Source: Okamejei kenojei
Lineage: Eukaryota
NCBI GenBank assembly: GCA_035221665.1
Contig: CM069160.1
Location: 4,836,001-4,900,000, forward strand
Direction of reading: 5' to 3'
Length of the DNA: 64,000 nucleotides
The number at the start of each line of letters is the position of its first letter. Positions within the stretch are counted from its first letter, which is position 1. The notes under the pieces are model-generated. The model had not been told where the DNA came from, searched no databases, and worked only from the letters and a program-made list of their open reading frames with translations. Of this stretch, positions 795 through 51,126 are shown in pieces. The position numbers and the translations under genes are program-made.

Positions 795-854
795 CCTTGA
801 TGTTGGTGAAGTTTGGCTCAGTTGCTGCTGTTGATGCGAGAGGTTGTGCATGAA

Positions 855-906
855 ATGGTTCTGTTCATCTTGCTGAGTTTCTTCTGTGTACAAGGGACTC
901 AAGCCG
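855..906 (+). CDS. MHC class I exon 1 (signal peptide [18 protein letters not shown])
   Basis: ATG in good context (gaaATGg), a hydrophobic 17-aa leader ending T-Q-A, and a consensus donor G|GTAAGT. Phase 1 matches the alpha1 acceptor. Confidence 0.8.
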
Positions 907-9900: not shown

Positions 9901-12900
9901 ATCGAAGATTTCGGCGAAAATCCACGCAGGTCACGGGGAGAACGTACTAACTCCGTACAGACAGCACCCACAGTCAGGATTGAAACCGGGTATCTGGCAC
10001 TGCAAACACTGTAAAAGGCAGCAACTGTGCCACTGTGCCGTCCTTATTGGTAACTTTATGTGATCTTATTTTGTTAGGATGCAAATTCTATGGGAATGCT
10101 TTCTCAAAGAGATAGATAATGATGTTAGAAATAACGAACTGCAGATGCTGGTTTGTACCAAAGTGTGTCACAAAATGCTGGAGTAACTCAATGGGTCAGA
10201 CAGAATCTCTGTAGAGAAAGGATGGGTGATGCTGGGTGAAGCTTCAGGTTGGGACCCTTCCTCAGACTGATGCTTCGGGTTTGGGGCCCTTCTTCAGACT
10301 AACCCTGCATGAGACTGAAGTAGGGTCTTGACACGAAGTGCCATCCAGTCTTTTTCTCCAGAGATGCTGCGGTCTTGGTGAGTTACTTTAGCACTTAGTG
10401 TCTAAGGTTGATAATGAGTTGTTCAATCCTGATTTTTTTTTTTTGTGATGTTAATTTCTGCACGTTCACAGGGCAGACTGTGAGAGTAAACAGTTGAATA
10501 ACTAGTCGAGCAGGAAATGTGTGGTATTTGAGGAAGTGTGAATGTGGGGCCTCACCGGTGAGATGATAGGGGAACTCCCTGACAAAGGAGAATGTGGTGA
10601 ACTATCAGAAAGTCACCAGGAGGTCATATCAAAGCAGAAGTTAAATGTTACATTGATAATTTTAGAGCCTGCTCTTGATGTACTGGCATGATGCAATCCG
10701 ATGTGGGCAACTTACTGTATATTGCAGCTCAAAATGATATAGAGATACAGCATGGGAACTGGCTCTTCAGCCCACCAGGTCCACGCTGAACAGCGATCCC
10801 CATACAGTAGCAATATCCTATAGACTAGCAACAATTTATAATCTTTACCAAAGCCTATTAAACTACAAACACGTCTTTGGAGTGTGGGAGGAAACTGGAG
10901 CACCCAGGGAAAACCCACAGGTCGAACGTAAAAACTCCACACAGACAGCACCCATGGTCAGGATTGAACCTGGCGGTCTCTTGTGCTGTAAGGCAGTAAC
11001 TCTACCGCTGTTCCACCGTCACCCTTTTGTGGGGGATCATGACAGAAGCCTCCTCGTGGCGATCCCTGGAACCGACGACACGATGCACTCTGTGACGCGT
11101 CGGGCGACCAATTCTGTCAACATGTTGGACGACGACAGGAGCCAACAGCGAGCTACATGTCGTCTGACACACGAGTGAATGAACCCCTGTTAGACTAATC
11201 AACTGAAGGTTACGACATAAATATGATGTGATGCAACTAATTGGGCGTGCAGCATAGAGAGTGCAGCACAGAAACAAGCCCTTTGACCCATCAAGTCCAT
11301 GCTAACCTTTTTGGTTCCTGATCTCTTTTTATCTTCCTGATATTTCCAATACCTACCCCTAGATTTTACTATTTAACGACACATGGAGTAATGTATGGTG
11401 GCCTGTGAACCAAATAACTGCCGTGACTTACATTTGTGGGTGGAATATCTGAATATCATATTATTTCCAAATGTTGATCAGTAAGGGCGGCACAGTGGGG
11501 CTGTGATAGAGTTGCTGCCTTAAAGTGCCAGTGCCCCAGGTCCGATCCTGACTATGGGTGCTGTCTGTAGGGAGTTTGTACATTCTCCTCATGACCAGTG
11601 TGGGTTTTCTCCAAGATCTTCACTTTCCTCCCACACTCCAAAGACGTACAGGTTTGTAGGTTAATTGGCTTGGTATAAATGTAAATTCTCCTTCGTGTGT
11701 AGGATAGTGTTAACGTGTGGACTCGTGCTGAAGGGCCTGTTTCCACACTGTATGTCTAAGCTAAACTAAAATAACCTAAGTTAGCTTGACATTTAAAATC
11801 ATATACAGCATAGAAACAGGCCCTTCAGCCCACCTTATCTATGCCGGCCAAGATGCCCCATCTACCCTTGACCCACCTACCTATATTTTAGCTTAATTTA
11901 ATTTATTATTAATGTCACGTGAAAATGTTTCGTGTTTGCTATCCAGTCAGTGAAAAGACTACATTACAATGAAGCCGTTCACAATATATAGATACAGGAT
12001 AAAGGCTATCATGTGCAGTGCAAATTAAGTCCAATTGGTGTTTTGCCGATTTCCCCCCAAACCTTTCCTATCCATAGAAATTTCTATTGCTTGACAATAA
12101 TTGTATTCTTTTATTTGTGTCTAGGGCCTCACACACTGATCTATTACTACACCCTGAACCACGGGAGTACTCATCTACCAGAATATAGTGTGGTGGGTGT
12201 TCTGGACGGTTGTGAGATACAGTATTATGACAAAAACATGGCCATTACAGTTCCAAGACAGAAATGGATGGCGGCTGCATTTGACAGGAGATACTGGGTA
12301 ACAAATACGGTTTCCGAAAATGGTTTCCATGGAATCATCAAAGGGCAAGTCGACGAGTGGATGCGGAGGCATAACGAAACAACAAGTTAGTTCATTCATT
12401 TGAATAAATTTGGATTGTGATCAATGTTAATAAAAAAATCTCTCAGAAATACCTCGCTGTGCCAGAGATCCAGGTTAGATCCTGACCTCGAGCAAGTTTA
12501 CACGTTCTCCCTGTGACCACACATATTTCCTCCAGGTGCTCCAGTTTTGTCCTATATCGTGTAAATGTGCAAGTTTGTAGGTTAATTGGGCTCTGTAAAT
12601 TGTTCTCGTTGTGCTCGTTGGGTGAGAATGTGGATAACATACTGTAGATGTGTAGGATTGAACTGCAGATGCTGGTTTACAGCACAGACACAAAATGCTG
12701 GAGTAACTCAGCGGGACAGGCAGCATCTCTGGATAGAAGACTCTTTGCATACCTTGGGTATTCATTATGAACACATATTCATCTATTCATGTTTCATGAT
12801 TAATTACTTTTTAAGACATTGCTTTTTGTTACCTCTTTGGTTACACATGAAACAAATTATATTTAATGTTTGACTCTGGACAGGGTAAGGTGTGTACGAT

Positions 12901-15900
12901 ACATCAAAATATGCACTGGGCATAATTTCTATCAATTTTCCATACCTTGCAATATTTATTATTATTTTCAAATTACATGTGAATTAATGTGAATAAGACA
13001 TTTATTGGATTATCGTCAGATTCATTGAACCATGTTTATTGAATCATATTGCCTTCAAAAATAAGATGTTTTATTTGCATTAATCATGGTGCGCATATTA
13101 TCTGCAACATTGTTATGTTTATGAGATTTATGAGCAAATTGCTGGGCCTCAAGATTGTGAACAAGAGAGAGAGTTTGGGCAAGCTAGGGCTTTATTCCAT
13201 GGAGCACAGTAGGCTAAGGGGTGATCTTATAGGGGTGCTTAAAATCATGAGGGGAATTGATAGAGTGTATGCGCGGAGCCTTTTACCCAGAGAAGGGGAA
13301 TAAAATGCCAGAGGACATGGGTTTAGTGTGAGAGAGGAAAGATTTGATTGGAACTGGGGCGCAATCTTTGTGCTCAGAGAGTGTTAAGTATATGGAATGA
13401 GCTGCCAGAGAATGGAGCTGAGGCAGGTACAATAACAATATTTAAAAGACACTTGGACAGGGACATGCATGGGAAAGGTTTTGAGTGATACAGTATATAC
13501 CCATTGCAGGGTAAATGGGACTAGCTTAGATGGGGTATCTAGATTAGCATGAACATGTTGAGCCAAAGGGCTTGTTTCCATGCTGTGTGACTCTCTCTAT
13601 GACTGCTTTATAGCAAAGAGCCCTGCTGCCTCACAGCTCCAGTGATCCGGGTTCAATCATCTCCAGTGCAATCAGTGCGGAGTATAAAGGGCCTGTCCCA
13701 CTTACGTGTCCTTGGCATGCAGATTACGCGACCTCGTCGTCGCGTTGAGGCGCACGGGCATCCAGTGGCCGCGCGGGGCCGGTCCCACTGAGAGGCGCGG
13801 AGGGGTATGTCGTTGTGCGCGGTATCGTGCGGCGCTCCGAAAGTTTGTAGCGAACGAATTCTTCGCGCGCCACCGGCCTGTCGCGTAACTGACGGCCAAA
13901 GTGGGACAGGCCCAAGACCCTGGCGCGACGCAACGTCTCACCTCCAGCAGCAGCAGAAGGAGGCAAACGATCGCCGAGCTCGGCCTGGGGTTCACCGGCC
14001 GTTACGGTCCGGATCCGCTCCCACTTCTACTCCCAGAGCGGGGCCAAGAAAATTGAAGATAGACACAAAATGCTGGAGTACCTCGGCAGGACCGGCAGCA
14101 TCTCTGGATAGAAGGAATGGATGACGTTTCGGGTCAAGACCCTTCTTTCAGACTGAAGAAGGGTCTCGACCCGAAACATCACCCATTGCTTCTCCCCAGA
14201 GATGCTGCCGGTCCCGCTGAGTTACTCCAGCATTTTGTGTCCATCTTCAAATGACGTTACACGCTCCAGACGGCTGTGCAGGCGCATGAAGTCGCAGGCG
14301 ACCTTCGCGGGACCGTCGCGCCTCAACGTGACCAGGAGGTGGCGTAATTAGCGTGTCAAGGACAGGTAAGTGGGACAGGGGTTTAAGCATTCTCCCTGTG
14401 ACAATGTTTGTTCTCCAGTTTCCTCCCACATACCAAAAATGTGCTGATTTAGTAGATTAATCCACCGCTGCAAATTTCTCTTCGTAAAGGTGCATTTGTG
14501 GCATTGATAGAAATGAGGAAGATCCGTTTTGGGCAAAATTAGTGTTGTTCTCTGGGCTAAAGTGGGCTCAGGAGGCTGAAAGGCCTCTTTCTCATGACAC
14601 TTGGAATTATGGACAGTTATTTACCCTTGAATTGCCTTCTCATTTTAGTCACAAGTGTAAAATTGAACGAATTGTCTGGATTGAACTATTTAAAAAATGT
14701 AGATAAAAGGAAGTGCAGATGCTGGCTTATACAAAAAAACACAAAGTGCTGGAGGAAATCAGCAGGTGAAGCAGCATCTCTGGAGAACATGGATAGGTGA
14801 CATTTCGGGTGAGGATCCTACTTCAGACTGAAGTCGGGTCACGTTAGAACATGCTTTGTACTCACACTCCCATGTTGGTTTTCAAGGATGTTTGTTATTC
14901 ACAGCTTGTAGATGTTACATATTCAGCAGAGAGAAGACGAGACAAACTAAAGCACCTGTAAAACACAACTAAAAGACTTCAGAAAGAAGCTTGAAAAGAA
15001 GGCTCATATCTAAACAACGTACTTTCAAGAGGGAGTTAGATTTAGCTCTTAAGGCTAAAGAAATCAAGGGATATGGGGAAAAAGCAGGAACGGGGTCCTG
15101 ATTTTAGATGATCAGCCATGATCATATTGAATGGTGCTGCTGGCGTGAAGGGCCGAATGGCCTACTCCTGCACATATTTTTCAAAGTTTCAATAATTAGT
15201 ATAGAGTCAGCTATTCATGGTATTTCTTGAAAACACGAAAACGAGAGAAACTAAAAGACCTGCAGAACAACTAAAAGAATGCAGAAAGCAGCTTGAAAAG
15301 AAGGCTCTTGATCTATACAACATCATTACTTTTTATTTGGCTGTCAATGTTTATGGTGTTTCTTATTGGAATGAAACCATCGTCCAAGTGTTGTCCCTTC
15401 CTTATTGCTCCTGGGGGCTGGTTGGCATTAGCTCATTACCTTCGTCCTAATAAAGGGTTGTTGTTCACAGTTGTGCCAAGGCTTTTATCAGTTATAACCT
15501 TGAGTTCACAAGCTGTTCTTTATCTCTGGGCTAAAGTTCCCAGACTCTTAATTTCAAGGAGTGAGCAGTTTTTAAGCAAACTCACCAGCAAATCCTTACA
15601 AATTTCTACACCCCCTCCTCCCCCCCTCCTTTGATTCACCTATCAATGCCAGAGGGAATGATTCACCTAAAGCCCCTGCCCCACTTGGGCGACCTCCACC
15701 GCGACCTCTGGCAAGTTTGCCCGCGACCCATAGTCCGGCAAGGTCGCCACGAGGTCGTAGGAGGTCTTTGTCACTCTCCTTCATGGTCGAGAGTGGTCTC
15801 CGCGTAGTCGAGGGTTCAGCTAGGTCGTGGCGTATTTTTCAAAATGTTAAAAGTTGACCGCGACTAAAAATAGGTCGCCGTGGGAAAAATCTATATTTTT

Positions 15901-18900
15901 TTAGTCGTAGGTCTAGTCGAAGCCGGTTGTAGTCGGTCGTGATGCTAGTCGTAGGTAGTCGAAGTAATATAAACAAAGAAACATAGAAAATAGGTGCAGG
16001 AGGTGGCCATTCGGCCCTTCGAGCCAGCACCGCCATTCATTGTGATCATGGCTGATCAATAACCCGTGCCTGCCTTCTCCCCATATCCCTTGACTCCACT
16101 TGCCCCTAGAGCTCTATCTAACTCTCTCTTAAATCCATCTAGTGAATTGGCCTCCACTGCCCTCTGTGGCAGGGAATTCCATAAATTCACAACACTAGAT
16201 GAAAAAGTTTTTTTCTCACCTCGGTCTTAAATGACCTCCCCTGCATTCTAAGAGTGTGGCCCCTGGTTCTGGACTCGCCCAACATTGGGAACATTTTTCC
16301 TGCATCTAGCATGTCCAGTCCTTTTAGAATTTTGTATTAAGATAAGATAAGATGCATTTATTTGTCACGTGTGCCAATTGGCACAGCGTAATTAAATCAC
16401 CATACAGCCATACATTAAAATAAAGAACACAACATGGAGTAGATAGGAATCAACATAAAACATCCCCCCACAGCAGGATCAAAATTTCCCACTGTGAGGG
16501 AAGGCACCAAAGTCAGTCTCTTCCCCTGATGTTCCCAATGTTCCCCCGTGGTCGGGGCCTCCCCGAGCCCCGAACCCCCTGCAGTCGCCACTACGGGGTG
16601 CTCCGGGGTGAAAGAAAGGTCAGTGGAAAAAAAGGTAATTTAAACAGCAGAATGTCACCTCTTTCACACCAAGGCATGTTCATTCATAGCTGGAGAGCTT
16701 TTTGCAGAGGGGACGTGTTTTAGAGATGACACCAAAAAGGCAGCAGCGCAGGGGGAGGGCACAACCCTCAAAAAAGCCTGCTATACAGGTGTTGCCCACC
16801 CAGGCGGAGTCCATCACATCACTGTTGTGATGAACATTGTCCCACATCTCCGCTCCATCCGACCCACAGCACGCGGAGGGTGGGGGCTGAACCGAGGGAT
16901 GTGCACCTTCGGCCGCTTTCAACTTGGTGCTTGGGTTCGGATTACCCAGTCACCTATGGCTTGTGTGGGGAAAATGAACCCCATACTCCCATCTCCCCCT
17001 TCTCTCTCCCCTCTTCTCTCTCTCCCCCTTCTCTCTCCCACCTCTCTCTCCCCCCTCCCTCTCACCTGGTCTTGGATCAAAGACTTGCACTGAAGTCCCC
17101 ACACTCTGTCCACACCTTATTAACCTGTTGACTGCCACGTTTTTATTTCACAATTGGCCATGACCTGAGTATACCCGGGGGTGACACTGAACAGGTTAAT
17201 AAGGAACAGTTTCCTAGGAAACGGCAAGCAGATGGACCTAAAGATCGTAGCCTGTGCACTATCCAGAGATGCTGCCCTGACCGGCTGAGTTACCCCAACA
17301 TTTTGTGTCTTTCTTAATTTTAGGAAGGAACTGCGGATGCTGATTGAAACCGAAGATTAACACAAAAAGCTGGAGTCAATCAGTGGGTGAGGCAGCAAGT
17401 CTGGAGAAAGGGAATAGGTGATGTTTCTGGTTGCGACCTCTATCACACCTGCCACCAAAATGTCACATTCCTTTTCACCTGAGATGCTGATGTCACAGCT
17501 TCTGGTGTCTTTCTTTTGTCTTTCTTAAATTGTGTTGACTTCATGCATGTGGCAATCAGGTGGTTTATATTATTGGCAGAAAATCCCATTGAAAGTAGGA
17601 AGTATTCTGCATTATAAGCACAGGGGGAATGGACATGCATATGTTACAATGCCCTGTTACAATGTCCTGTTACCGTGACTCCCATGACTTATGTATGAGT
17701 TATTTAATCACCAGTTCCAGTGTGAGGAAGGATGACAATGGCAAAGGAATGGAAGCTTGCATAACCAAAAAGGTTTTAAATTTAATTAGAAAGAAAAAAA
17801 AAGAAAGTGCATGTAAGGTTCAGGAGGATGGAATCAGGCAGGAGCTTTGAGGAATGTAAAGAAAGGAGGGAATAACTCAGGTGTGTGATTAGAGGGTGGC
17901 ACAGTGGCACAGCTAGAGAGTTGCTGCCTTGCAGCACCTGCAGCGTTGGAGACCCGCCGTCGATCCTGACTACGGATGCTGTCTGTAAGGAGTTTGTACG
18001 TTCTCCCCGTGACTACGTGGGTTTTCTCCGAGATCTTCGGTTTCCTCCCACACTCCAAAGACACTCTAAAGTATGTAGGTAAATCGGCTTAGAATAAATG
18101 TAAATTGTCCTTAGTGTGGGCTGAAGGGCCTGTTTCTGCGCTGTATCTCTAAAGCTTAAAACTAAAGGGGCCAATAGAGGCCACAAATTGGCTTTGGCGA
18201 GTCAGAATACAGAAAATCCCTCATCTTTTTCAATGTCTCAAGGTCAGCTTATTGTCACATGTACAAATTAAGGTGCAATTAAATTCAGATTACAATACAG
18301 TCACACTAAAAAAATGCAAAGGCCGCCAACACCTCGATGTTAGGCTTCAGTGTGGACGGAGATAAGATACGGAAAAAAAAAAATGTCATCTACATCGAGG
18401 TAAGAGATTAGAAAAAGTTTCCTCCATCCCCCATACTTTGCATTTGGTTTCACCAAGAAAGACATGGAGAAAAGCAAGGACTTTTAATAGTAAGTACAGC
18501 ATATAATCCTCCAACATTTTCGCCACCTGCAACAGGATCCGACATCTTCCCATCTCCACCACTTTCTGCTTTCCGCAGAGATCGTTCCCTCCGAACCTCC
18601 CTGGTCAACTCGTCCCTTCGCACCCAAACCACCCCCTCCCCAGACACTTTCTCCTACATCCGCAGGAGATGCAACAACCGTTCCTTTAGGTCCGCCCTCG
18701 ACTACATCCAAGGACCCAAAGCCTTTCCAGGTGAGGCAGATGTTCACTTGCTCCTCCCCCAACCTCATCTACTGTATCCGCTGTTTCCGTTGTCATCTTC
18801 TGTACATCGACGAGACCAAGCGCAGGCTCGGCGATCATTTTGTTGAACACCTCCGCTCAGTCCATCTTATCCTCCCTGATCTCCCAGTGGCTCAGCACTT

Positions 18901-21900
18901 CAACTCCCCCTCCCATTTCCAATCTGATGTTTCTGTCCTGGGCCTCCTCCATTGTCAGAGTGAGGCCCAGCACAAATTGGAGGAACAGCACCTCATATTT
19001 CGCTTGGGCAGTCTACACTCCAGCGGTATGAACATTGACTTCTATAACTTTCGATAGCCCTTGATTTCTCTCTCCGTCCCCTCCCCCTTCCCAATTCTCC
19101 CACCAGTCTTACTGTCTCCGCCTACACTCTTATCTTTGTCCCTCCCCTGAACATCAGTCTGAAGAAGGGTCTCGACCCAAAACGACGCCCATTCCTTCTA
19201 TCGAGAGAAGCTGCCTGATCCGCTGAGTTACTCCAGCATTTAGTGTCTACCTTTGATTTTAACATCTGCAGTTCTTTCTTACACCTGGAGAATCAATGTG
19301 GAGAATGCTAACATGCAGGGGCACTTTGAAGTTAAGCAAGAAGGAGATGTTGGGTCACTTGAAGAGAAATGTGGATAAATCCCCAGGACAGAGGGGTGTA
19401 GTGGATGATGATAATAATAATAATCGTTGAAAACATTAGTGCCATGCTGGTTTTTGACTGGCACGATGACGGAGCAACACACATCTCTGTCTTCCATGCA
19501 GCTGGCAAGCTCCTCTTTTATCTCTACAGGTGGGTCTTCCATAAACATCTTCAGCATCATCTTGATTGGCCGACCCAGGTCTCGTCTTCCATGGGTGGGT
19601 TCCCACAGCACAACCTTGTTTGCTGACATTTCTTGGTGGCGGAGCCAGTGACCTGCGAGCCTCATCCTTCTCAACGTGATCTTCTCGGTCAGAGGTGGAG
19701 TCTCCCCATAGAGCTGGGTGTTGGTGATGTGGTCCCTCCAACTGACATTTTGAACTATTCTGAGCATTCGGATGTAGGTACCATCGAGAGACTTGGACAG
19801 TGCTGGAGTGAGAGTCCATGCCTCACACCCGTACAATAATATGGTCTCTACAGTTGCATGGAAGGCCGAATATTCAGACTGTAGTTCAGTGACAAGTAGA
19901 GTTCTGCAGGGGTCTGTCCTGTGACCCTTGCTACTTGCGACATATATAAATGACTAGGACCCTGGTGTTCAGAAATGACCCCAGTCATAACAATTAATCA
20001 AATAATGATTTTGTTTTTTCTTTCAGATTATCATTATGTTCAAGGACAGTTTGGTTGTGAGGTGAGCGATCACAGTCCCAATGTAGGGATATTGAAGTTG
20101 GCTTTTGATGGAAGAGATGCATTTAGTTTTGATAAGGACAAACTAAAGTGGACGGTGCATGACCCAATAGCTGAGACCTTCAAAGAGAAATGGGACAAGA
20201 ATGAAAAAATGAACCGTTATTTCAAGAGCTTGTTAGAAAATGACTGTGTGGATCTATGGCATACATACTACGCAATTGGAAAGACATACCTGACCAGAGA
20301 AGGTGAGTTCAGAACAAAGGATGTTGTTTTGTGATGGTAGGCAATTAGTAATATTTCACTGTTTTTGAGGCAATGAGTAATATTATCTCTGACCCAATCA
20401 TGACAGAGGGAAAGGTAATTCGGCCCATTGAGTCTATGCTAGTTTTCAATGCAATGTCGACGAACTGTTCCACAACTCTCTCTCACAACTTGCACTCAGC
20501 TCCCTCGGATTCTCCGTTCACTCAGTTCCACTACGGATAATTTGCAATGTCCGACTAGCTCACTGGCACGTTTTTGGTATATGGAACAAAACTGGATCAC
20601 ATGGAGGAAACCAACTGAGTCATAAGGTCATAAGTGATGGGTGCAGCATTAGAACATTCGGCCCATCAAGTCTACTCCGCCATTCAATCATGGCTGATCT
20701 ATCTCTCCCTCCTAATTCCATTCTCCTGCCTTCTCCCCATAACCCCTGACTTGCATACTAATCAAGAATCCATCTATGCCTTAAAAATATCCATTGACGG
20801 ATTCCAAAGCCTTCTGTGGCAAATAATTCCACAGAATCACCACCCTCTGACAAAATATATTCCTCCTCATCTCTTTCCCAAAAGAATGTCCTTTAATATT
20901 GAGACAATTACCTCCAGTCGTAGACTCTCCCACCAGTGGAGACATCCACTCTATCCAAGCCGTTCACTATTTGGTATGGTTCAATGAGGTCCCTCCTTAT
21001 TCTTCTAAAATCCAGCGAGTACAGGTCCACTGCCATCAAATGCTCATCATATGTTAACCCATTCATTCCTGGGATCATTCTTGTACACCTCCTCTGGACC
21101 CTCTCCAGAGCCAGCACATCCTTCCTCAGATATGGTGCCCACAATTGCTCACAATGCTCCAAATGTGGCTTGACCGATGCCTTATAGAACCTCAGCATTA
21201 CATCCCTGTTTGACAGGGAGAAAGTGTAATTGATGTCTTTCATATTAGTTAACCATGGATATACTTGACCACGTTTGACAGCCCCTAATACGATTGCATC
21301 TCTATCACACATCTCTATAGAGCATAGCGTTAAGCTTCGAAGGGCAACATTTACACGAGATGTGCAGGTCAAGTGTTTTTTGTACAGAGAGAGCTTGATA
21401 CCTAGAATGCGCTACCAGGAGTGGTGGTAGAGGAGGACATGATAATGGTGCTTAAGAAGGTTTTAGACAGGCTCGTGGATATGCAGCGAATACAAGGATA
21501 CGGATCACATGCGGGTAGTGGAGATTAGTTTTGATTTAGTTTAAAGATAGAGTATGGAAACAGGACCTATGGGCCACTGAGTCTGCACTGACCAGCAATT
21601 GCCCATTCACTATTTCTGTCCTACAAGCTGGGGACAATTTACAAAAGCCAATTAACCTGCATGTCTTTTGTATTTGGGAAGCAACCGGCGCCCCCAGAGA
21701 AAACCCACAGGTTGACATGTGGAACTGAGTTTGATAGGCTGCAACATGTCCAGACACAACATGTCCAAGGGAACGTACAAACACTGTCCAGACAGCACTC
21801 TAGTCAGGACCGAACCCGGGTCTCTGATGTAAGACAGCCACTCTATCACTGTGCCATTGTGTTGCGTTAGTTTAACTTGGTATCCTGTTCGACATGGACA

Positions 21901-24900
21901 TTACAGGCTGAAAGTCCTGTTCCGGTGCAGTACTGGTCTGTGTTCTATATATTCTCATTGGGCTGGGCAGGGCAGGGATATGTTTTCCACTCATCCAGCC
22001 TCCATGGTGAATACATCCTCCCAGTTTAAATCTGATTCAATTAGTCAATCCATTTCTTCCTTCCCTCCCCCTGCTCTGCTCCCCATTCTATATTTCGAAA
22101 TAGTCATTCCCTGTTTCGCTCCTTGGTCTGCTCTACTATCCCCACAACTTTCCTCTACTTTCCTGTCTTGGCGCATGCAACATCTATCCATTTACTTCTT
22201 CCCTTCCCACTGTCCATAGACCCAGGCAGTTCTTCAACGTGAAACAGCGTGAAACACTTGCACTTCCAGTCAAATCTACTGCATTTGGTTTTTATGACGT
22301 AATCTTCCACATTGCATCAATGAAACAAATTAAGTGGCTGCTTTCTGGAGAACCCACATTCAATCCATGGGACTTTCTAAGATTCACAATTCCTGCCACT
22401 TTAATTCTCCATTCAACACCCACCATGATCCATCCATCTGTACCTCTTACACTAGGATAACAAGGCTGAAAGTAACCTTGAGGACCAACAACTCAGCTTC
22501 TGCCTGGACATGTTGCAACTTTCAAACTCAATTCCACATTCAACGAGTTGCATTCCCTGTTGATAAAAGAACTGGTCATTTCAACTGTTAAGTTAAAGTC
22601 AGAAAGAACAGATGCAAGAAGTATGAAGAAGGATCCCAAGCTGAAACATTACGTAACATGTCTTCCAGTGGCTGCCTGAGCCACTGAGTTACACCCGCAC
22701 GTTTTTGTGTTTTTTTTAAATTACAGTTACGTTATCCACCTGCAAAATCACGACAGCCTGACATACATGAATACTGCAGTATGTGCTGCATTTTATGTAA
22801 CTATGTTTAGTTTCATGCATGCAGAGATGCAGTGAAATGGTTTAGATGGAACGGCAGATGCTGGACACCCCATCCCTTCTCTCCAGAGCTGCTGCCTGTC
22901 CCGCTGAGTTACTCCAGCCTTTTGTGTCTATCTGCAGTGAAATGGTTTTTCGGCATTCTCTCCAGTCAAGTCATACTGTACATAAGTACAATACGTCCTC
23001 TTCTGGGACAGCTCGCAGAGATCCACCACATTCCAGGACTATCTTGCAGCTTCCAAGTCTCTGAAAAGTCTGTTTTTACCCCAAGGAAATACCCAATTTC
23101 TCATTTTCTCATGATAAGGCCCAGTGTCATAACAGCACTGGATTGGTGAAGTAGAGGCGCCTGCCTCAGTTTAAGTTTTTCTGTTTCAAGATTGTAATCG
23201 AACCCTCGTCACTGGAACTGTGCCGCAGTGCCACCCCATTGTGTATCAGTCTCAATTGTCTTTCAACATGCTGGAATCATTTGTTTTTTTAACCTTTTTA
23301 GACTTTTTTCATGAATTGTTCAGCATAAACAGTTATGCTACAACACTTAAGAGCAGCTGCCACTTAGTTCCAGAGACGTAACAACACAAGAGATGGTGTT
23401 GGAAGAATGATCAAACTCACACATAGTGGTTAGAATCCATAGACTATTATTAGTAACTCTGCAGAGGAAACACAAGGTGCTTTATTCTCAGCATGCTTAC
23501 TGCGAGTCTACCAGAGAGAGCGAGAGAGAGAGAGAGAGCTCCCTGATAAGCCTGTGGGCGGAGCCACAGTATGAGTGACACTAATCTACAGATAGGCACA
23601 GGGGTACGTTTAGATTTATTATTGTCACGTTTAGTTTGGAGGTACAGCATGGAAATAGGCCTTTTGGCCCACTGAACCTGTGCTGACTACCCAAACATTA
23701 GTTCAATCCTACACACTAGGGACAATATACAGAAGCCAAAAATCTTACAAACCTGCACGTCTTTGAATGTGACCGAACTGGAGCACCCGGAGATTACTCA
23801 CATGGTCATGGGGAGCATATATGAACTCCATATAGACAGTACCCATTGTCAGGATTGAACTTGGGTCTGTGGTACTGTAAGCAGCAACTTTCCCGCTGCG
23901 TCACTGTGCTGCCCATGTACTGAGGTACAGTGTAAAGCTTTGTTTTGCATGCTATCCAATTGGATGAGACAACAACATACATATATATGATCAAGTCAAA
24001 CTCAGGTACTGTAGGTAGAGTAAAGGGGAAGGTACAGAGTGCAGCATATAGTTCTCAGCAATGTAGCACACCAATTCCATTAGAGAAGGGTTTCAACACG
24101 AAACGTGACACATTCCTTCTCTCCAGAGATGCTGCCTGACCCATTGAGTTACTCTAGCATTTTGTGTATATCTGCGGTTTAAACCAGCATCTACAGTTCC
24201 TTGCTACATAGTTCCATAAACAAAGTCCACTGTCTATAATGGAGTAGTGGTCAATTGGACAGTACCCTAGCTGACGGAACGATCATTCAGAAGCCTGATT
24301 TTCTCCTCGGTTATCAAGTTTCCGAGTAAGCCATTTGATCCTGAAACCTGCCCACCATTCAATATGTCCATGGCTGACGTTCCTCGGGCCTCAACTCCTG
24401 TTCGGTGCCAGTTCCTCATTGCACTGAATTCTGCAATCTTTCAAAAGTTTAACGACCGCCACATTAAATACTTCCAATGATTATGTCTTCACAAATCTCT
24501 GGGGTTGAGAGTGCCAGAGAATGACCACACTCCGCAAAAAGAGATTTTATAAACAATGACTGGTCCTTTTCATCTCTTATTGAAGAAGAGTGAAAATACT
24601 GCCAATTTTAAGCTTGTCCCCTCCCCAATTGGCCCTCATTTTGTAACATTATTTATTATTATCAATAATGTGCCGTAGTGAAAAGATTTGCCGTTGGTAT
24701 TAGTTTATTATTGTCACATGAACTGAGATATAGTCTAAAGTTTGTCTGTGTGTTATCCAATCATATCATACTACACATGTGCAATCAAGCCATCCACAGG
24801 TAGAACAGTGCAAAGAGAACAATATTCAGTGTGCAGAATTACAATATCATAGCATTACAGTTACAGAGAAAGTGCAGATCAAAAAGAGTTGCAAGGATCA

Positions 24901-27900
24901 CAATGAGATTGGTTGGAAGATCAGGACAACACCTTATCTTACATGAGAATCATTCAGTAGTCCAATAACAGTGGGGAAGAAGGTGTTCCTGAATTTAATG
25001 GTACGTGCTTTCAAACTTTCTTGTGTACTGTCTTAACAGGGAGCGTGCGATCCCTTTTAAACCACGTGGTTGGTTGATGGTGATGAAAGAGGCAAAATGG
25101 GGCAGATGTGGACAGTAACTTGGTGGTTGTAGTAGACTGAATAATATTTTGTGGTGAGTGACTGTGCAAGTTTTACTGAAGGTGAAAATAACCAACTTAC
25201 TGTCTTGTAGTTTCCCCTGAGGTCACTCTCGCTGCCCGCCCTGATGATCATTCAGTCCTGTACTGCACTGTGTTTGGATTTTACCCACCGGCTATCAATG
25301 TCAGCTGGTTGCAGAATGGTCAACATTTCTCTGAGACCAAATCTTCTGGGGTCATACCCAATAACGATGGAACATATCATCTAACGTCTGTCCTTGAGTA
25401 TGATCCGTATGATGGGAAACAGTATTCCTGTCATGTCGATCACAGCAGCCTGCCCGGTGGGAAGACCATCATCTGGGGTAAGAACATTAAATATTATTTA
25501 GTAGATAATCATTATCTTCTGTTGTTTCCATTTTAATCATTGTGACTACATCCCATATTCCAAGATGCTTAAACTTTATTTGTTTAGTGGTGTTGCTCTA
25601 AGCAATCACATAATCAGCACCCACTCTCCACTTGAGCAGAAGACTTTGTCAACAGAAAATTTATCAAAAGTAAATAAATAACTGATATACAAGGAAGGAG
25701 TATTTGGGATTCTCAGTGGTGGAACTGAAATCCATGAAAGGTACGTTTAAATAAAAAAAATAATCTTTCCTCATGATGTGATTAACAGCAAGGCACTGGG
25801 GGAGCACATGCCCCAATCCGAATCAGTGGTCTGAAGTGCAAATGATTGAGAGCTTCATGTTCCTTGGCATGAATACATCCAATATTCTGTCATGGACTGA
25901 CCACATAGCCAAGGAGGCACACCGGCACATCTACTTCCTCAGGAGACTGGGAATATTCATCATGTCTCTGGTGACTCCAGCAAACATCTACAGATGCCGC
26001 TTGAGAAAGCATGTTGTGAGTTGCATCACATCTTGATTTGGGAACTGCACTGCCCAAGACTGCAAGAATATACACAGAGTTAAAGATCATCACACAGGCC
26101 AGACTTCCTACTATTGACTCAATCTACACCTGGTTGCCTTGGAAAACGAGCCTTATCCCACCCCGGTCATTCCTCCTTCCTGCTCCCATCAGGCAATAGG
26201 TACAGAAAGTTAAAAATATGCACTGCCTGACTCAGGAACACCCCCTTTCCATCTGTTATCAGGCTTCGGAAGTGTCCTTCCAGAATGTATGTTTAATGCC
26301 CGATTCACCTCAACCTCATAACACATTGAATATTGTCTGTGGAACTGATGCGATACAATGTTGAGAACTATATTCTGTACTCTGTATCCTCCTCTTTGCT
26401 CTATCTATTGTTTTTGAGTTTTTTATTTATGTATAGTATCTAATTTGTTTGGATAGCATGCAAAAAAACCTTTTCACTGTATCTTGAAACATCTGGCATT
26501 AATTAAAACGAAACCTAATGAAGTAAGTTCTGTGACGCAAGTTACAGCTTCTGCAACGAAAAATATAACTGCCGGACAAACAGTGATCGTACCAATTTGA
26601 TTCCAGGTATGCTGCACTAACCTACACAAATGCTCACTTTTGAAGATTCCCTCGAACAATGCACAACTAAGGAATCTGATGTTTCACTCTGAAGACTGTT
26701 GACATACTCCGAAACTTAATTTCCAACCTATCTATCTATCATCAGCATTCTAGGCTACAGCACCATCAGTCCCTTCACCTGCTCTTAATGCCAACGATAA
26801 GTAGTTCACTTTCGTGCATTGATTCCCAACCTGCAGTTGCCGTTTCCCAACCTGAACACTCCTTTAAGACAACTCTCTGCTTGCTCTTAATTGTTTTTCC
26901 ATTCATGCTAATTATTACCCCCAATGTCATAAGCCATGTGCCTTTGCATCACTTGATCAGATATCTTATGAAACTCAAGATATTCTGGCGACATCTGGTG
27001 GTCAGACCACTTATTGCTAGAACCCTCGTCAGGGGAGCTGGGACTATCATGTGCTAATTATTTGTTCTGAAGAAGGGTCTTCGCCTATCTCCTTCGCTCC
27101 TTAGATGCTGCTGCAACCCTGGGACTATCATGTGACAGGGTTTTTCAGTCAGTCAACTGGGGGTACACAAAAGGCTGGAGAAACTCAGCGGGTGCAGCAG
27201 CATCTAAGGAGCGAAGGAGATAGGCGACGTTTCGGGTCGAGACCCTTCTTGTGTGCCCGATTACAACGGCAGGAACGTTGCGCAAATCCTTACTAAACGC
27301 GAGTGTGCCGAAACAGTTTATCTTAAAAAAACATTGATTTGTTCACGACGCTTGGACCTCTACATTTTAGAAACATAGAAACATAGAAAATAGGTGCAGG
27401 AGGAGGCCATTCTGCCCTTCGAGCCAGCACCGTCATTCATTGTGATCATGGCTGATCGGCCCCTATCAATAACCCGTGCAAATATATTGTATTTATTTTG
27501 TTTCTCATTCCAATTTTGTTACCTATTCTGCTTTTCCATCATTTTGTTTTTGAATTTTAGGCTGTGCACACCTGCAAACTACTGCTGCTCGAATATACAT
27601 TGTCTGCGGGTTCCTGTTGCATTTTCAAAGAATTCTAATCAATTTCTCAAACAAAGTTTGAAGAAGGGTCCCAAAACGAAATGTCAACTGTCCATGTGTA
27701 GGGAGATAGATGGACACACATTGCTGGAATAACTCAGCTGGTCAGGCAGCATCTCTGGAGAAAAGGAATAGCTGATGTTTCGGGTCACAATCCTTCTGAC
27801 TGAGTACATGTTCGCCAGAGATGTTGCCTATTCCGCTGAGTTACCCCGGCATTTTGTGTCTATCATGTATATTCTTTCCACTGACTGGTTAACACGTAAC

Positions 27901-30562
27901 AAAAGCCTTTCACTGTACCTCAATACTCGTGACAATAAACTAAACTAAAGCTTTTGTGTAAATCAGTATCTGCATCTCTTTCTTTCTAGAATTTTCCCAT
28001 TAATGCCCTGTTAATGCACTTTATTATTTTGTTATTATTAAATGTTCTGCATTACAGCATGAAATATCCAGCATTTTCCCCAAAACAGATGTTCGGTGAT
28101 ATAGGGTTAAAGCTTTCTGCTTTAACTTTCACCTTCTTTCTTGAATTAAGTTGTGGCTGTGATGGTCCCATAGATCATACAGTTGTACAGAACAGATATT
28201 GTCCCCTTTGCCATGCTGCAGAACTCCATGATTCAAAACAACATATTTATATACCTTGAAAAGCGCCAAAGATAGACACAAAATGCTGGAGTAACTCAGC
28301 GGTCAGGTAGCATCTCTGGAGAAAAGGAATAGGTGGCATTTCGGGTCGAGACCCTTCTTCATCCTGAAGTCTTCAGACAGTGCCAATCTATTTAGATGCA
28401 CAGCTTAACAATTGATTTGTAAAATGATGCATTCTTATTTTTCAGAAGGAAATAGGAAGAAAGACAGGCACATAGGCCTTATTGCCGTGTGTGTGCTGAT
28501 ATTACTGGCTATTGTCTTGGCAGTTATTGTTTGGTGGAGAAAAAAGAGGAGAGGTAAGATGGAAACACTGTGATGCACTGTTGCTAATAAAGTATTGGGC
28601 TTGAAGAAATGATTGATCTCAAGTAGGGTAAGGCAGCAGCTACACCTGAAATGCCTCGCCAGTCACCACTGTCAACTAGCCTTTGTGCTGTTGTTAAATG
28701 TTTTTGATAATCAGATATTTGAAAATTGTGAATTCAGAGTAACATAAATAGGTAGACATTATGGATTCACTGTGCCAAATCCTAGAGATATCATCGAAAG
28801 GTACAGCATACAAGCAGTCCTTTTGGCCCACTGAGTCCATGCGACCCACCAACCACCTGTTCTCATGAATTCTATCTTATTGCACCTTCTCATCCAGTCA
28901 CCCACCTACTAAGGGCAATTTACAGTGGTCAATTAAACTATACTTGTACCTGTCCAAGTGTGTTCTAAATGTTTTTTTTAATACCTGCCTCGACTCCTTC
29001 CCCTGGAATGTTCCATATTTCCACTTCCTATGGTTCCGAATAACTCGTTTCCTTCTCACCTTAAACCTAAGTCCTCTGGTTCTTGATTACACAAGGCTGG
29101 TTAAAAGATTCCGTGCATTCAATCTATCTGTTCCCCTTGATTTTATAAACCTCTATATGATCATCCCTCAGCCACTTGGATGCCAAAGAATAAAGTCCAA
29201 GCGTGCCCATCCTCTCCCTGAATCTCAGGCCCTGTTAATGACATCCTTCCGATAGTGGAGTGACCAACACTTAACGCAATACTCCATATGCGGCCGCACC
29301 AGCATCTTGTACAACTGTAGCAGAACATCCCAACTGTTTTATTCAGTACCTTGACATGTTATTGATGTTCATGATTATTCTGTTCTTTGTGCCTGGGCCA
29401 TTTTGACTTTGTCACATTTTACTTGGTTTATGATATTGTATAGGATTTGCAATCACACCTCCCAATTGACTAAAATTATCCCAATTAACTAAATGCCTAC
29501 TATGACATTTAACTTATTGCATTATATTCAGTAAAGGGTAGAAGCTGCAGTTTTTTAAAAAAAGGGCAGGTTTTTATTACACTCTATGTGGTGTGTGCCT
29601 GGGAAGCACTGCCAGGGATGGTGGCGTTTGGTGTGCACCTTCCTGGGTGCATGGAGATGCAGGGGTTGGAGGGACATGAATCATTTGCAGGCAGATGCTG
29701 CCTAACTGGTGTCTGTCCGACTGATCTGGAGGCATTTCAATGCGATCTGATCGTCAGGCAGGGAATACTTCCAGTGACCCAATGTTGCGGAGTCGCTGAA
29801 TTTTACGGTGCATGGGAATGCCCCTGTAATAGAGGAACAGGTCCGTTGTCCAACAATGTTTTTGCTGAACATGATGCAACTTGAGGCAGAGTGGCGCAGC
29901 TGATAGAGCTGCTGCCTCAGAGCGTCAGAGACATCAGTTCAATCCTAACCTCGGTTGTCGGCTGTGTGAAGTTTGCATGTTTTCCCCATGACCGCATGGG
30001 TTTCCACTGTACTCCAGTTTCCACACACATACCAAAGATGCCAGGGTTTATGGATTAATTGGTCTCTGTAATTTGACCCTAGTGAGGAAGCGAAAGTTGG
30101 AAACGTAGAACTTGTGTGGACGAAACTATTTGAAGGAGTATTGAGTTTTTTGTTTAGTTTAGAGAGAGAGCATTGAAACGGACACTTCGGCCCACTGAGT
30201 CCGCACCAACCAACGATCACCCACATAATATAGGGACACAAGTCAATTAACCTACATACCTGCACGTCTGTCTTTGGAATGTGGGAGGAAACTGGAGCAC
30301 CTAGAGAAAACCTATGCAGTCACAGGGAGAAGGTACAAATTCCGTACAGACATCACCCGTAGTCAGGATCAAATCCGGGTGTCTGGCCCTGTACCATTAT
30401 ATCTGGAAGGTGGATGTTATGTGGGATGGATCAACAGTTAAAGCGAATAAACAAGTTGCATCTTTCTGAGTTCTGTTCTCTGCCATTTCTTAGTTCTCTA
30501 ATATATAATTTCCCTCCTCAGATTATCAAAATATTCAACCAAACCAGAACGTGCACTGCTAA
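855..30562 (+). CDS. MHC class I heavy chain, probably a non-classical lineage (6-exon spliced model, 334 aa)
   Basis: Exons 855-906, 12125-12385, 20027-20302, 25211-25477, 28446-28553 and 30522-30562 join in one open frame (1005 nt including stop). All introns are phase 1 with GT-AG ends, the canonical class I layout. The first and last exons are less certain than the middle four. Confidence 0.9.
1170..2090 (+). mobile_element. Penelope-like retroelement 3' fragment (GIY-YIG endonuclease remnant plus terminal repeat)
   Basis: ORF 1528-1854 [30 protein letters not shown]...EQHLVFRSG...GMN is a decayed Penelope GIY-YIG domain, followed by the recurrent ccagagatgctgcctg...gagttactccagca repeat. 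Confidence 0.85.
2186..3730 (+). mobile_element. CR1-type LINE, truncated ORF2 (reverse transcriptase) and 3' end
   Basis: [51 protein letters not shown], with stops and deletions. 3745-3990 re-duplicates about 2930-3165. Confidence 0.9.
4520..6380 (+). repeat. Three tRNA-derived HE1/V-SINE-like SINE copies (about 4520-4765, 5535-5845, 6113-6380)
   Basis: Shared head gcacagtgg..cag..gtagag..gctgcctca...ggttcaatcc, body ggagttt..acgttctccccgtgacc and tail gaagggcctgtttcc. Confidence 0.8.
6417..6744. mobile_element. MITE (PIF/Harbinger-like) with TAA target-site duplication
   Basis: TIRs aagccttgtcccactgtacgagttcattcaa / ttgaatgaactcgcatcgtgggacagggcca. TAA at 6414-6416 and 6745-6747. Internal 2x repeat tcttcccgag..tacctgccgttagcat. 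Confidence 0.8.
7259..7291 (-). ncRNA. Minimal hammerhead-ribozyme-like motif
   Basis: Reverse complement reads tctgaagaagggtctcgacccgaaacgtcacc; core identical to 73-104. Confidence 0.5.
8089..8620 (-). mobile_element. CR1 LINE 3' fragment
   Basis: acatagaaacat tail plus ORF2 C-terminal sequence shared with 39396-40570. Confidence 0.75.
9730..11770. repeat. HE1/V-SINE-like copies (9730-10040 -, 10740-11020 -, 11485-11770 +)
   Basis: Same consensus. Further copies at about 17897-18165, 21535-21860, 23630-23915, 29885-30390, 42250-42540, 48913-49140, 52050-52385 and 61490-61800. Confidence 0.8.
12125..12385 (+). CDS. MHC class I exon 2 (alpha1 domain)
   Basis: Acceptor tgtctag|, donor |gttagt. 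[10 protein letters not shown]...VGVLDG...PRQKWM...RRYW...MRRHNETT shows H3, Y7, D29, Y59, R84 and the N86 glycosylation site. 261 nt. Confidence 0.95.
13130..13600 (+). mobile_element. CR1 LINE 3' fragment
   Basis: [31 protein letters not shown]. Confidence 0.75.
13688..14383. mobile_element. GC-rich MITE (PIF/Harbinger-like) with TAA TSD, inserted in a SINE
   Basis: Imperfect TIRs of about 65 bp: agggcctgtcccacttacgtgtccttgg... / ...caaggacaggtaagtgggacaggggtt. TAA at 13685-13687 and 14384-14386. Confidence 0.85.
15671..15966. mobile_element. Truncated MITE of the same TIR class
   Basis: taa|agcccctgccccactt left end and a CpG-rich body with gtagtc repeats. Right end not found; it abuts a CR1 tail. 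Confidence 0.55.
18495..19285 (+). mobile_element. Penelope-like retroelement 3' fragment
   Basis: ORF 18731-19057 [34 protein letters not shown]...EQHLIFRLG; same family as 1170-2090. Confidence 0.85.
19404..19865 (-). mobile_element. RTE/RTEX-like LINE 3' fragment
   Basis: YGCEAWTLT...[19 protein letters not shown]...[11 protein letters not shown]...[14 protein letters not shown] is the RTE-group C-terminus, ending in an (ATT)n(ATC)n microsatellite tail at about 19404-19423. Confidence 0.8.
20027..20302 (+). CDS. MHC class I exon 3 (alpha2 domain)
   Basis: Acceptor ttttctttcag|, donor |gtgagt. HYVQGQFGC...AFDGRD...KWT...KEKW...CVDLWHTY shows the C101-C164 pair, Q96, D119, G120, K146, W147 and Y171. 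276 nt. Confidence 0.95.
20620..21210 (-). mobile_element. CR1 LINE 3' fragment
   Basis: [36 protein letters not shown]. Confidence 0.8.
25211..25477 (+). CDS. MHC class I exon 4 (alpha3, C1-set Ig domain)
   Basis: Acceptor tcttgtag|, donor |gtaaga. VSPEVTL...[17 protein letters not shown]...PNNDGTY...[10 protein letters not shown] contains the Ig C1 GFYP and YxCxVxH signatures. Confidence 0.95.
25795..26480 (+). mobile_element. Rex1/Babar (L2-group) LINE 3' fragment, decayed
   Basis: ESFMFLG...[21 protein letters not shown]. Related fragments lie at about 47720-48720. Confidence 0.65.
26986..27003 (-). promoter_or_regulatory. Candidate CTCF site in MHC class I intron 4
   Basis: Reverse complement gaccaccagatgtcgcca closely matches the CTCF core CCACCAGRKGGCGC (one core mismatch). 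Motif match only. Confidence 0.35.
28446..28553 (+). CDS. MHC class I exon 5 (connecting peptide, transmembrane helix, basic stop-transfer)
   Basis: Acceptor atttttcag|, donor |gtaaga. [36 protein letters not shown], in frame with alpha3. Confidence 0.92.
30522..30562 (+). CDS. MHC class I candidate exon 6 (cytoplasmic tail [13 protein letters not shown])
   Basis: Polypyrimidine acceptor tttccctcctcag| in non-repetitive sequence. The phase-1 reading gives a YxxPhi motif right after the basic stretch. TAA at 30560-30562; possible ATTAAA signal at 30595-30600. No transcript evidence. Confidence 0.65.
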
Positions 30563-45164: not shown

Positions 45165-46637
45165 ATAACTATATAACAACTACAGCACGGAAACAGGCCC
45201 TCTCGGCCCTTCCAGTCCGTGCCGACCATTTGTTTTCCCCTAGTCCCATCTACCTGCACGCAGACCATACCCCTCCATTCCCTTCACGTCCATATACCTA
45301 TCCACTTTAGTCTTAAATGTTAAAATCGATCCTGCCTCCACCACCTCTGCTGGAAGCTCATTCCACACAGCCACCACCCTCTGAGTAAAGAAGTTCCCCC
45401 TCACGTTACCCCGAAACTTCTGTCCCTTAATTCTCATGCCATGCCCTCTTGTTTGAATCTTCCCTACCCACAATGGGAAAAAGGTATCCACGTCAACTCT
45501 GTCTATCCCTTTCATCATTTTAAAGACCTCAATCAAGTCCCCCCTTAACCTTCTGCGCTCCAAAGAATAAAGACCTAACTTGTTCAACCTTTCTCTGTAA
45601 CATAGTTGCTGGAACCCTGGCAACATTCTAGTAAATCTCCTCTGTACTCTCTCTATTTTGTTGACATCCTTCCTATAACTAGGCGACCAAAATTGTACAC
45701 CATACTCCAGAATTGGTCTTACCAATGCCTTGTACAATTGTAACATTACTTCCCTACTCCTATATTCAATGCTCTGATTTACAAAGGCCAGCACACCAAA
45801 GGCTTTCTTTTCCACCCTATCTACATGCGATTCCGCCTTCAGGGAACTATGCACAGTTATTTCCTAGATCCCTCTGTTCCACAGCATTCCTCAATTCCCT
45901 ACCATTTACCATGTACTTCCTATTTTGATTTGTCCTGCCAAGATGTAGCACTTCACACTTAACAGCATTAAACTCCATCTGCCATCTTTCAGCCCACTTT
46001 TCCAAATGGCCCAAATCTCTCTGTAGACTTTGAAAATCTACTTCATTATCCACAACACCACCTATCTTAGTATCATCTGCATACTTACTTTATCCAATTT
46101 TCCACCCCATCATCCAGATCATTGATGTACATGACAAACAACAGTGGACCCAACACAGATCCCTGAGGCACCCCACTGGTCACCGGCTTCCAACCTGACA
46201 AACAGCCATCCACCATTACTCTCTGACATCTCCCATTCAGCCACTGTTGAATCCATCTTGCTACTCCGCCATTAACACCCAAAGATTGAACCTTCTTAAC
46301 CAACCTTCCATGGGGAACCTTGTCAAAGGCCTTACTGAAATCCATATAGACAACATCCACTGCTTTACCCTCATCAATTTCCCTACTTATCGCTTCAAAA
46401 AAATCAAGAAGGTTTGTCAAACATGACCTTCCAGGCACAAATCCATGCTGACTGTTCCTGATCAGACCCTGTTTATCCAGATGCTTATATATATTATCTC
46501 TAAGTATCCTTTCCATTAATGTGCCCACCACTGACGTCAAACTAATAGGTCTATAATTGCTAGGTTTATTCTTTGAACCCTTTTTAAACAATGGAACAAA
46601 ATGCGCAGTACGCCAATCCTCCGGCACTATTCCCGTT
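45165..46637 (-). mobile_element. Young CR1 LINE, 5'-truncated, near-identical to 36800-38272
   Basis: Same ORF2 motifs and 3' tail, with long identical stretches shared with the 37-38 kb copy. Confidence 0.92.
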
Positions 46638-50939: not shown

Positions 50940-51126
50940 CTGGAGGAAGCACAGAACACTTCGATATCATTATTTAAACAGAGCAACCAATACAACAGAA
51001 CACAAAGTTTCTGCGATCAGTGCGATGCCATCAATTCAGATGAATCGCTGAGGCAACCAAAAGTAAAGATAATTCGTTCATTAGTGAAAGTAATGCAAAA
51101 ACAGCATAACACGGTGCTCTACCTAT

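Follow-up and report, generated by a model that had tools for sequence, protein, structure and literature searches.

Can a major histocompatibility complex (MHC) class I molecule that has kept six of the eight residues by which classical chains anchor a peptide, and has lost the other two, still be a peptide presenter? The question is raised by a gene in a stretch of 64,000 nucleotides from the skate Okamejei kenojei (NCBI GenBank assembly GCA_035221665.1, contig CM069160.1, positions 4,836,001 to 4,900,000 of the forward strand), which is referred to below, at its full length, as the window; all coordinates are counted from its first letter. An initial annotation, made from the sequence alone, had described the groove encoded there as half-classical. 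We showed that the gene is complete and transcribed. The comparison with sharks and rays shows that it is an intact orthologue of an old elasmobranch lineage, represented in PDB by entry 9CH4 and very probably corresponding to UFA or UGA, and makes it likely that the product presents a non-peptide ligand, most likely a lipid.

A complete and transcribed class I gene

In tblastn searches with skate orthologues, the window proved to contain class I exons of one set only. Together they form a complete gene of six exons on the + strand (834-30562), with 341 codons, which is also the length of the Amblyraja and Leucoraja orthologues. The reading frame is open across all six exons, the splice sites are good, and the five introns are all of phase 1 with GT-AG borders. 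The leader exon (834..906, + strand), placed by tblastn with the skate orthologues P0154 and P0156, begins with an ATG at 834 and comprises 24 codons and the first base of a split glycine codon (donor G/GTAAGT). The alpha1 exon (12125..12385, +, phase 1, 86 residues) has the borders AG/GG ... A/GTTAGT, and the alpha2 exon (20027..20302, +, phase 1, 91 residues) the borders CAG/AT ... G/GTGAGT. The limits of the initial annotation, 12125 and 20302, proved to be the first base of the former and the last base of the latter, and the strings quoted in it, including DGRDA, are all found in the in-frame translations of these two exons. The alpha3 exon (25211..25477, +) encodes an immunoglobulin C1-set domain with both cysteines present. 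It is followed by an exon (28446..28553, +) for the connecting peptide, the transmembrane segment and a basic stop-transfer sequence ending in RKKRR, in which 34 of 35 residues are identical to those of Amblyraja P0154, and by the last exon (30522..30562, +), which encodes a cytoplasmic tail of 13 codons with a TAA stop at 30560-30562. The tail carries YQNI, a motif of the form Y-x-x-hydrophobic that the orthologues keep in varied form.

Given the MHC_I and C1-set scores and the complete six-exon, phase-1 model, this is a real MHC class I gene and a chance open reading frame is excluded. Pfam MHC_I matches the alpha2 exon alone with 55.8 bits (cut-off 28.3), and C1-set matches the alpha3 exon with 72.2 bits; the alpha1 exon alone matched no Pfam family, although it does match class I chains in PDB. 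Full-length orthologues reach 73.9 and 83.3 bits on MHC_I, and UAA 175 bits. The build is that of a class I chain, with one domain per exon, the pair C101-C164 in alpha2, the cysteine pair of alpha3 and a glycosylation sequon at N86.

The gene is transcribed, since an 807-nt contig of the same organism (run X3, record 25) carries the spliced alpha2 and alpha3 exons: it aligns to 25209-25346 (0 other letters) and, directly adjoining, to 20027-20300 (1 other letter). This junction is the alpha2-alpha3 splice of our model, and the two overlapping bases are an AG that belongs both to the end of the exon and to the acceptor. These borders are also where contigs of a related skate (run X2, records 17 and 24) begin or break off. 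Contigs from four runs cover the alpha2 exon, but such contigs tell of presence only and not of the level of expression. The same-organism contigs (two runs) differ from the window in alpha2 at just two sites, both synonymous (20136 and 20163), a count that has to be read with the small number of samples in mind and with the fact that contigs drop rare variants.

Read-through of the alpha3 donor (25478-25536) would add 19 residues before a stop. Fifteen of these agree with the C-terminal residues of Leucoraja P0157, a model of 311 residues, and Rhinoraja P0180 ends in a similar way. This may reflect a membrane-less isoform, or shared intron sequence that gene prediction has taken into the models.

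Relatives in sharks and rays

A phmmer search of 1.84 billion representative proteins with the alpha1 exon gave 235 matches at E <= 0.001. Three of them stood at E < 1e-30 (87, 64 and 63% identity), and the best single-domain match after these was 46% identical; a word-based search returned 17 proteins at E <= 1e-20 among 1,351 candidates. The relatives are known from NCBI gene models, whose names do not go beyond "class I histocompatibility antigen, F10 alpha chain-like" and the like, and derive from the skates Leucoraja, Amblyraja and Rhinoraja, from other rays (sawfish, manta and stingray) and from eight sharks. Our comparisons were made with (i) 24 proteins of this lineage from sharks and rays, (ii) 13 sequences of the shark Triakis scyllium (P0075 and 12 further alleles), which we take to be classical UAA alleles, and (iii) 12 proteins of a sister lineage. 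Over the three ectodomain exons, the 24 lineage proteins are 60-93% identical to the window, with the highest values in Rhinoraja (92-93%), Amblyraja (91.7%) and Leucoraja (89-90%), followed by the other rays (62-73%) and the sharks (60-67%).

The best PDB match of the alpha1, alpha2 and alpha3 exons alike is chain A of 9CH4 (molecule name "Ig-like domain-containing protein", 268 residues), with E values of 1.4e-36, 2.6e-34 and 1.3e-33 and about 60% identity, while the next matches of alpha1 and alpha2 lie at E 1e-10 to 1e-14. Counted by hand in the printed alignments, 53/84, 54/89 and 48/87 residues, respectively, are identical. The chain shares Y7, Y59, G97, F99, F143, K146, W147, L159, L160, L167 and Y171 with the window gene, from which it differs in having K84 (R in the window), Y122 (D) and L168 (W). 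It appears to be a carpet-shark-type orthologue, nearest to P0172 of Stegostoma. From these matches and the trees below, the window gene is clearly orthologous to genes annotated in skates, rays and sharks and to 9CH4 chain A, which disposes of the suggestion that it might represent a new lineage: it adds a member to an already annotated and structurally solved elasmobranch lineage, and is no new kind of molecule.

Maximum-likelihood trees were built for each ectodomain exon separately, with 45 rows for alpha1 and 42 each for alpha2 and alpha3. The rows were the window exon, 20 lineage proteins, one sister protein, four UAA-type sequences and 19 others hand-picked from the 150 alpha1 phmmer matches listed. 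Near-duplicate Rhinoraja proteins (P0178, P0183, P0184 and P0186) and partial or fused models (P0001, P0152, P0153, P0155, P0160-P0163, P0169, P0179, P0180 and P0182) were left out, and a match of at least 55 residues was required, which removed Hypanus, gar and salmon from the alpha2 tree and P0036, P0039 and P0083 from that of alpha3. In the alpha1 tree the window falls in a skate clade (99/99), then in a ray clade (96/92) and then in a clade of the lineage with its sister (99/95). In the alpha2 tree it lies inside the lineage clade (99/97), which is again joined by the sister (98/94), and in the alpha3 tree the skate and ray clades are both recovered at 100/99, with the branch of the whole lineage not starred (68/95). 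The UAA-type sequences stand elsewhere in each tree, and in those of alpha1 and alpha2 they are separated from the lineage by starred branches. The per-domain phylogeny proposed in the initial annotation has thus placed the gene in an elasmobranch clade away from UAA, though on rows that hold no CD1, MR1 or named UBA, UCA, UDA or UEA sequences.

The number of lineage proteins differs between species. Rhinoraja longicauda has ten distinct ones (P0164 and P0178-P0186; 11 XP accessions) on one chromosome-scale record of 41.5 Mb; in Pristis and in Pristiophorus the number is three, and in most sharks one. The ten Rhinoraja proteins are apparently nearly identical to one another, as far as can be seen by eye, and are presumed from the proteins alone to come from separate loci. 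In skates, the lineage looks like a small multigene family.

Anchor residues and groove composition

Residues are given in HLA numbering, which is our own mapping via conserved landmarks. The alignment with classical Triakis UAA is gap-free in the alpha1 helix and throughout alpha2, so that the assignments do not depend on the placement of gaps. This alignment bears out the residues read earlier from the sequence: Y7 (12142-12144), Y59 (12292-12294), R84 (12367-12369), K146 and W147 (20188-20193) and Y171 (20266-20268) are present, T143 is replaced by F (20179-20181), Y159 by L (20230-20232) and W167 by L (20254-20256), and position 123 is A. The alpha1 exon also encodes the N86 sequon (NET) and the lineage motif GFHGIIKGQ, and the alpha2 exon G97, F99, C101, D122 (20116-20118) and C164. 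As for position 123, the reported loss of F/Y says little in sharks, because this residue is S even in all 13 classical Triakis alleles.

In the Triakis alleles all eight anchors are invariant (Y7, Y59, R84, T143, K146, W147, Y159 and Y171 in 13 of 13). Among the 24 lineage proteins, position 7 is Y in 22 and F in two, position 59 is Y in 23 and Q in one, position 146 is K in 23 and R in one, position 147 is W throughout, and position 171 is Y in 22, with one L and one F. At position 84, R occurs in ten proteins (all those of skates), Q in eight, K in four and E in two. Position 143 is F in 18, L in three, S in two and M in one, hence hydrophobic in 22 and never T, and position 159 is L in all 24. 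The 12 sister proteins have F (nine) or a gap (three) at position 7, W (nine) or L (three) at 147, and uniformly H59, Q84, L143, R146, L159 and Y171. Outside the eight anchors, position 167 is L in 23 of the 24 lineage relatives and W in 13 of the 13 Triakis alleles. The count of six anchors in eight is therefore true of the window, but R84 is a skate trait (10 of 24 relatives), and only five (Y7, Y59, K146, W147 and Y171) are kept lineage-wide. With eight of eight anchors in UAA, six in the window gene and two (W147 and Y171) in the sister lineage, the "half-classical" look is mostly a trait of the lineage, which is intermediate between classical UAA and the more hydrophobic sister lineage.

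The rest of the groove is strongly conserved as well. L159, F99, L114, F156 and W147 are found in all 24 relatives, and G97, W81, Q77 and I74 in 23, and the whole groove signature of the lineage (GFHGIIKGQ, G97, F99, L114, F156, L159 and L167) is present in the window and in 20-24 of the relatives. When 41 groove positions were compared, the window was identical to Amblyraja at every one, and only seven varied among the ten skate proteins, as against 16 among the 13 UAA alleles of one shark. Both ends of the groove have been rebuilt. The A end has L in place of Y159 and of W167; at the F end, T143 has become F and L81 has become W, and position 84 is unconstrained. At the centre of the floor, G97 replaces the R or Q of UAA, and L116 its D. 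Hydrophobic residues occupy 23.0 of the 41 positions on average in the window lineage and 25-29 (mean 27.9) in the sister lineage.

These results support the non-classical status claimed for the gene: T143 and Y159 are replaced lineage-wide (retained in none of the 24 relatives), the alpha1 and alpha2 exons lie outside the UAA clade, and groove variation in skates is low.

An extra cysteine, encoded at 12211-12213 (residue 29 of the alpha1 exon, approximately HLA position 31) within the motif LDGCE, occurs in 22 of the 24 lineage proteins but in neither the sister lineage nor UAA. No likely partner is apparent for it in skates, while a further cysteine stands at position 63 in three sharks.

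The putative beta2-microglobulin face

All six residues named in the initial annotation as intact contacts for beta2-microglobulin (T10, Q96, A117, D119, G120 and D122) are indeed carried by the window gene. Five of them are kept in 21-24 of the 24 relatives (Q96, A117, D119 and G120 in every one), but D122 occurs in none, the relatives having Y (23) or F (one). The residue which was the best single argument for beta2-microglobulin binding is thus peculiar to the window copy, and we rejected it as a conserved contact. It is one of only four residues, among the 265 of the ectodomain, by which the window differs from all 24 relatives. The G at 20116 is also present in same-organism contigs of two runs, including the spliced one, and a contig of the related skate has T there, coding for Y.

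The nature of the ligand

In the reading that we favour, a non-peptide presenter, the ordinary holding of a peptide by its two ends would be lost, and the groove would be used for a hydrophobic or amphipathic ligand that is itself conserved. Most likely this is a lipid, the kind of ligand reported for UFA/UGA. Its apolar part would be taken by F70, I73, I74, F99, L114, L116, F143, F156, L159, L160 and L167, while a head group could be bound by the retained polar cluster of Y7, Y59, Y171, D163 and K146. By analogy with CD1, the motif in the tail may send the protein through endosomes for loading, and the T cells to which the ligand is presented would be of limited diversity.

Several observations weigh against this reading. 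The survival of five to six of the eight anchors would also suit a specialised peptide or lipopeptide binder, and five charged residues remain in the groove (E67, E80, R84, K146 and D163). The remodelling toward hydrophobic residues that had been proposed for both groove ends is true at each of them, but the overall shift is modest: by a crude count, 23 of the 41 positions are hydrophobic in the window and 19-21 in UAA, and the positions themselves are those of the pocket residues of HLA molecules. By sequence, the gene is as far from CD1 as from class I chains in general. The Pfam family MHC_I_3 (PF16497), which we take to be built on CD1, scored below its cut-off of 35 with the alpha2 exon (20.0 bits), with P0172 (29.8) and with the sister protein P0007 (22.7), and did not match P0154 at all; nor is there a CD1 chain among the 60 PDB matches listed for alpha1 or alpha2. 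Finally, no paper in the literature searched links 9CH4 or any sequence to UFA or UGA, and we infer this link ourselves.

Could the protein, then, be a specialised peptide presenter in the style of mammalian class Ib molecules, which takes narrow or N-terminally modified peptides and in which L159, L167 and F143 merely make the choice narrower? Five anchors have persisted in 22-24 of the 24 relatives, over all the time that separates sharks from rays, which argues for their use. The groove is also just modestly more hydrophobic than that of UAA (23 versus 19-21 of 41), and the alpha2 exon scores alike against classical chains and MR1 (55.1 and 53.7 bits). However, T143 and Y159, invariant in 13 of 13 Triakis alleles, are never kept in the lineage, and position 84, which in classical molecules holds the C-terminus of the peptide, drifts among R, Q, K and E. 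Moreover, the F end contains the bulky W81 and F143, the endosomal-type tail is atypical of classical peptide presenters, and lipid binding is reported in PMC12562908 for CD1-like shark genes. We therefore regard a pure peptide presenter as unlikely. There is a similarly small chance of a molecule combining both modes, in which the A-end cluster (Y7, Y59, Y171 and D163) would grip, together with K146 and W147, a polar head or a short peptide, and the hydrophobic centre would take an acyl chain. If so, the ligands would be lipopeptides or other amphipathic molecules and not lipids of the CD1d type, the multiplication in skates (ten Rhinoraja proteins) would have produced a small family of presenters, and position 122, on the beta2-microglobulin face, would have reverted in this species from the Y of the lineage to the classical D.

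It is very unlikely that the protein has no presenting role and acts as a class I-like receptor, chaperone or transport protein, with the groove residues serving the fold or a partner. Such a role would accord with the lack of a Pfam family for the alpha1 exon alone, with the low MHC_I scores of the orthologues (74-83 bits versus 175 for UAA) and with the presence of zinc-alpha-2-glycoprotein chains among the matches of alpha2 (E 3e-11). Yet the protein resembles beta2-microglobulin-bound presenters in its membrane anchor, in the N86 sequon, in an alpha3 domain with an intact C1-set fold and in the conserved floor residues, the residues that would point into the groove are the most conserved ones, and the papers on UFA and UGA describe ligand-bound molecules. 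Hardly any weight can be given to the idea that the window copy is a decaying duplicate, with its unique change of Y122 to D a mark of relaxed constraint. The lineage is multi-copy in skates (ten Rhinoraja longicauda proteins on one record) and D122 occurs in none of the 24 relatives, but the six exons are open and well spliced, a mere four of 265 ectodomain residues are unique, and all 41 groove positions equal those of Amblyraja. The spliced contig, moreover, carries the G at 20116, and both variants of the same-organism contigs (20136 and 20163) are synonymous.

Other features of the window

Downstream of the class I gene, open reading frames for GPR139-like receptors lie on the minus strand at 50038-50970 and 62029-62948. 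In Leucoraja erinacea, a GPR139 protein and models that fuse class I with 7-transmembrane sequence, from the same 250 kb contig, belong to the 90% cluster of the lineage as well; since both kinds of gene occur on this contig, the neighbourhood of class I and GPR139-like genes is common to skates. Within the alpha2-alpha3 intron (20473-24292), the stretches at approximately 20655-21170, 22869-22935 and 24120-24180 collect thousands of contigs of 90-95% likeness in four runs and are high-copy interspersed repeats. Reverse-transcriptase-like open reading frames are present on the minus strand at 37548-38944, 40664-41185 and 45240-46627, and runs of N at about 34.8 kb, 53.2-53.9 kb and 58.3-58.7 kb.

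Comparison with known systems

UFA and UGA are described in PMC12562908 as CD1-like genes of sharks and rays in single or low copy, and are MHC-linked according to this paper and PMC10751288. Their binding of lipids, like those of human CD1d, is suggested there by a crystal structure and mass spectrometry (personal communication in PMC12562908). According to PMC10751288, which cites unpublished data, UFA resembles CD1 in the region that binds the ligand and lies together with UDA and UEA in an MHC-Ib cluster. Like UFA/UGA, the lineage studied here is non-classical and occurs in both sharks and rays; a structure is reported for UFA/UGA, and the window gene has a tail of endosomal type. The reported single or low copy number differs from the ten proteins of Rhinoraja and the three each of Pristis and Pristiophorus. 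A non-peptide ligand of the window gene, as proposed here and, as one possibility, in the initial annotation, is a reasonable reading and fits the published descriptions. The window lineage and its sister together fit well the pair of related old genes UFA and UGA, and the former is very probably one of the two.

The sister lineage (P0007 type, "MHC class I-related gene protein-like", compared here as 12 shark and ray proteins) forms a clade with the window lineage and has G97, A123, M152, Y155, F156, L159, L160, D163 and Y171 in common with it. It is only 41% identical to the window, however, and has a more hydrophobic groove, W167 and C99. In Leucoraja, the longest contig given for P0007 and that given for the window-lineage protein P0157 have the same length (127,421 bases), and are probably one contig. 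The best PDB match of P0007 is also 9CH4 (E 3e-60); 8GM8, considered as a structure of the sister lineage, was rejected, as it matches P0007 at E 3e-32. Sister proteins were seen in at least 12 sharks and rays, nearly all with precomputed matches to PF16497. Three proteins of Callorhinchus milii (32-33% identity) also carry a PF16497 match, and chimaeras may thus hold a related gene; both observations come from the set P0200-P0210, P0231, P0240 and P0246.

Classical Triakis UAA has the same exon plan and domain lengths as the window gene, and shares with it Y7, Y59, R84, K146, W147, Y171, C101, C164 and the N86 sequon. It differs in T143, Y159 and W167 (13 of 13 alleles), and in having R or Q at position 97 (G in the window), D at 116 (L) and R or W at 156 (F). 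MR1 is likewise a non-classical, conserved chain, with a gap-free match to the alpha2 exon (53.7 bits). This score is not above that of a classical chain (55.1 bits), and alpha1 matches MR1 only weakly (E about 0.01), so no orthology is implied. A special kinship to CD1 or MR1 was rejected on the Pfam and PDB scores.

The likeness to CD1 is one of working only: a class I-like chain that is probably non-polymorphic, a tail with Y-x-x-hydrophobic, and lipids reported for the shark genes. YQNI is also the end of the tail in human CD1b. Of the classical anchors, CD1 is not known to keep any, whereas the window lineage keeps five. The interest of this gene lies in the detail, namely in D122, in the copy number in skates and in the graded loss of anchors, of which five are retained lineage-wide, six in skates and two in the sister lineage. 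Such a graded series is relevant to the origin of non-peptide presentation in early jawed vertebrates, be it out of peptide presentation or alongside it.

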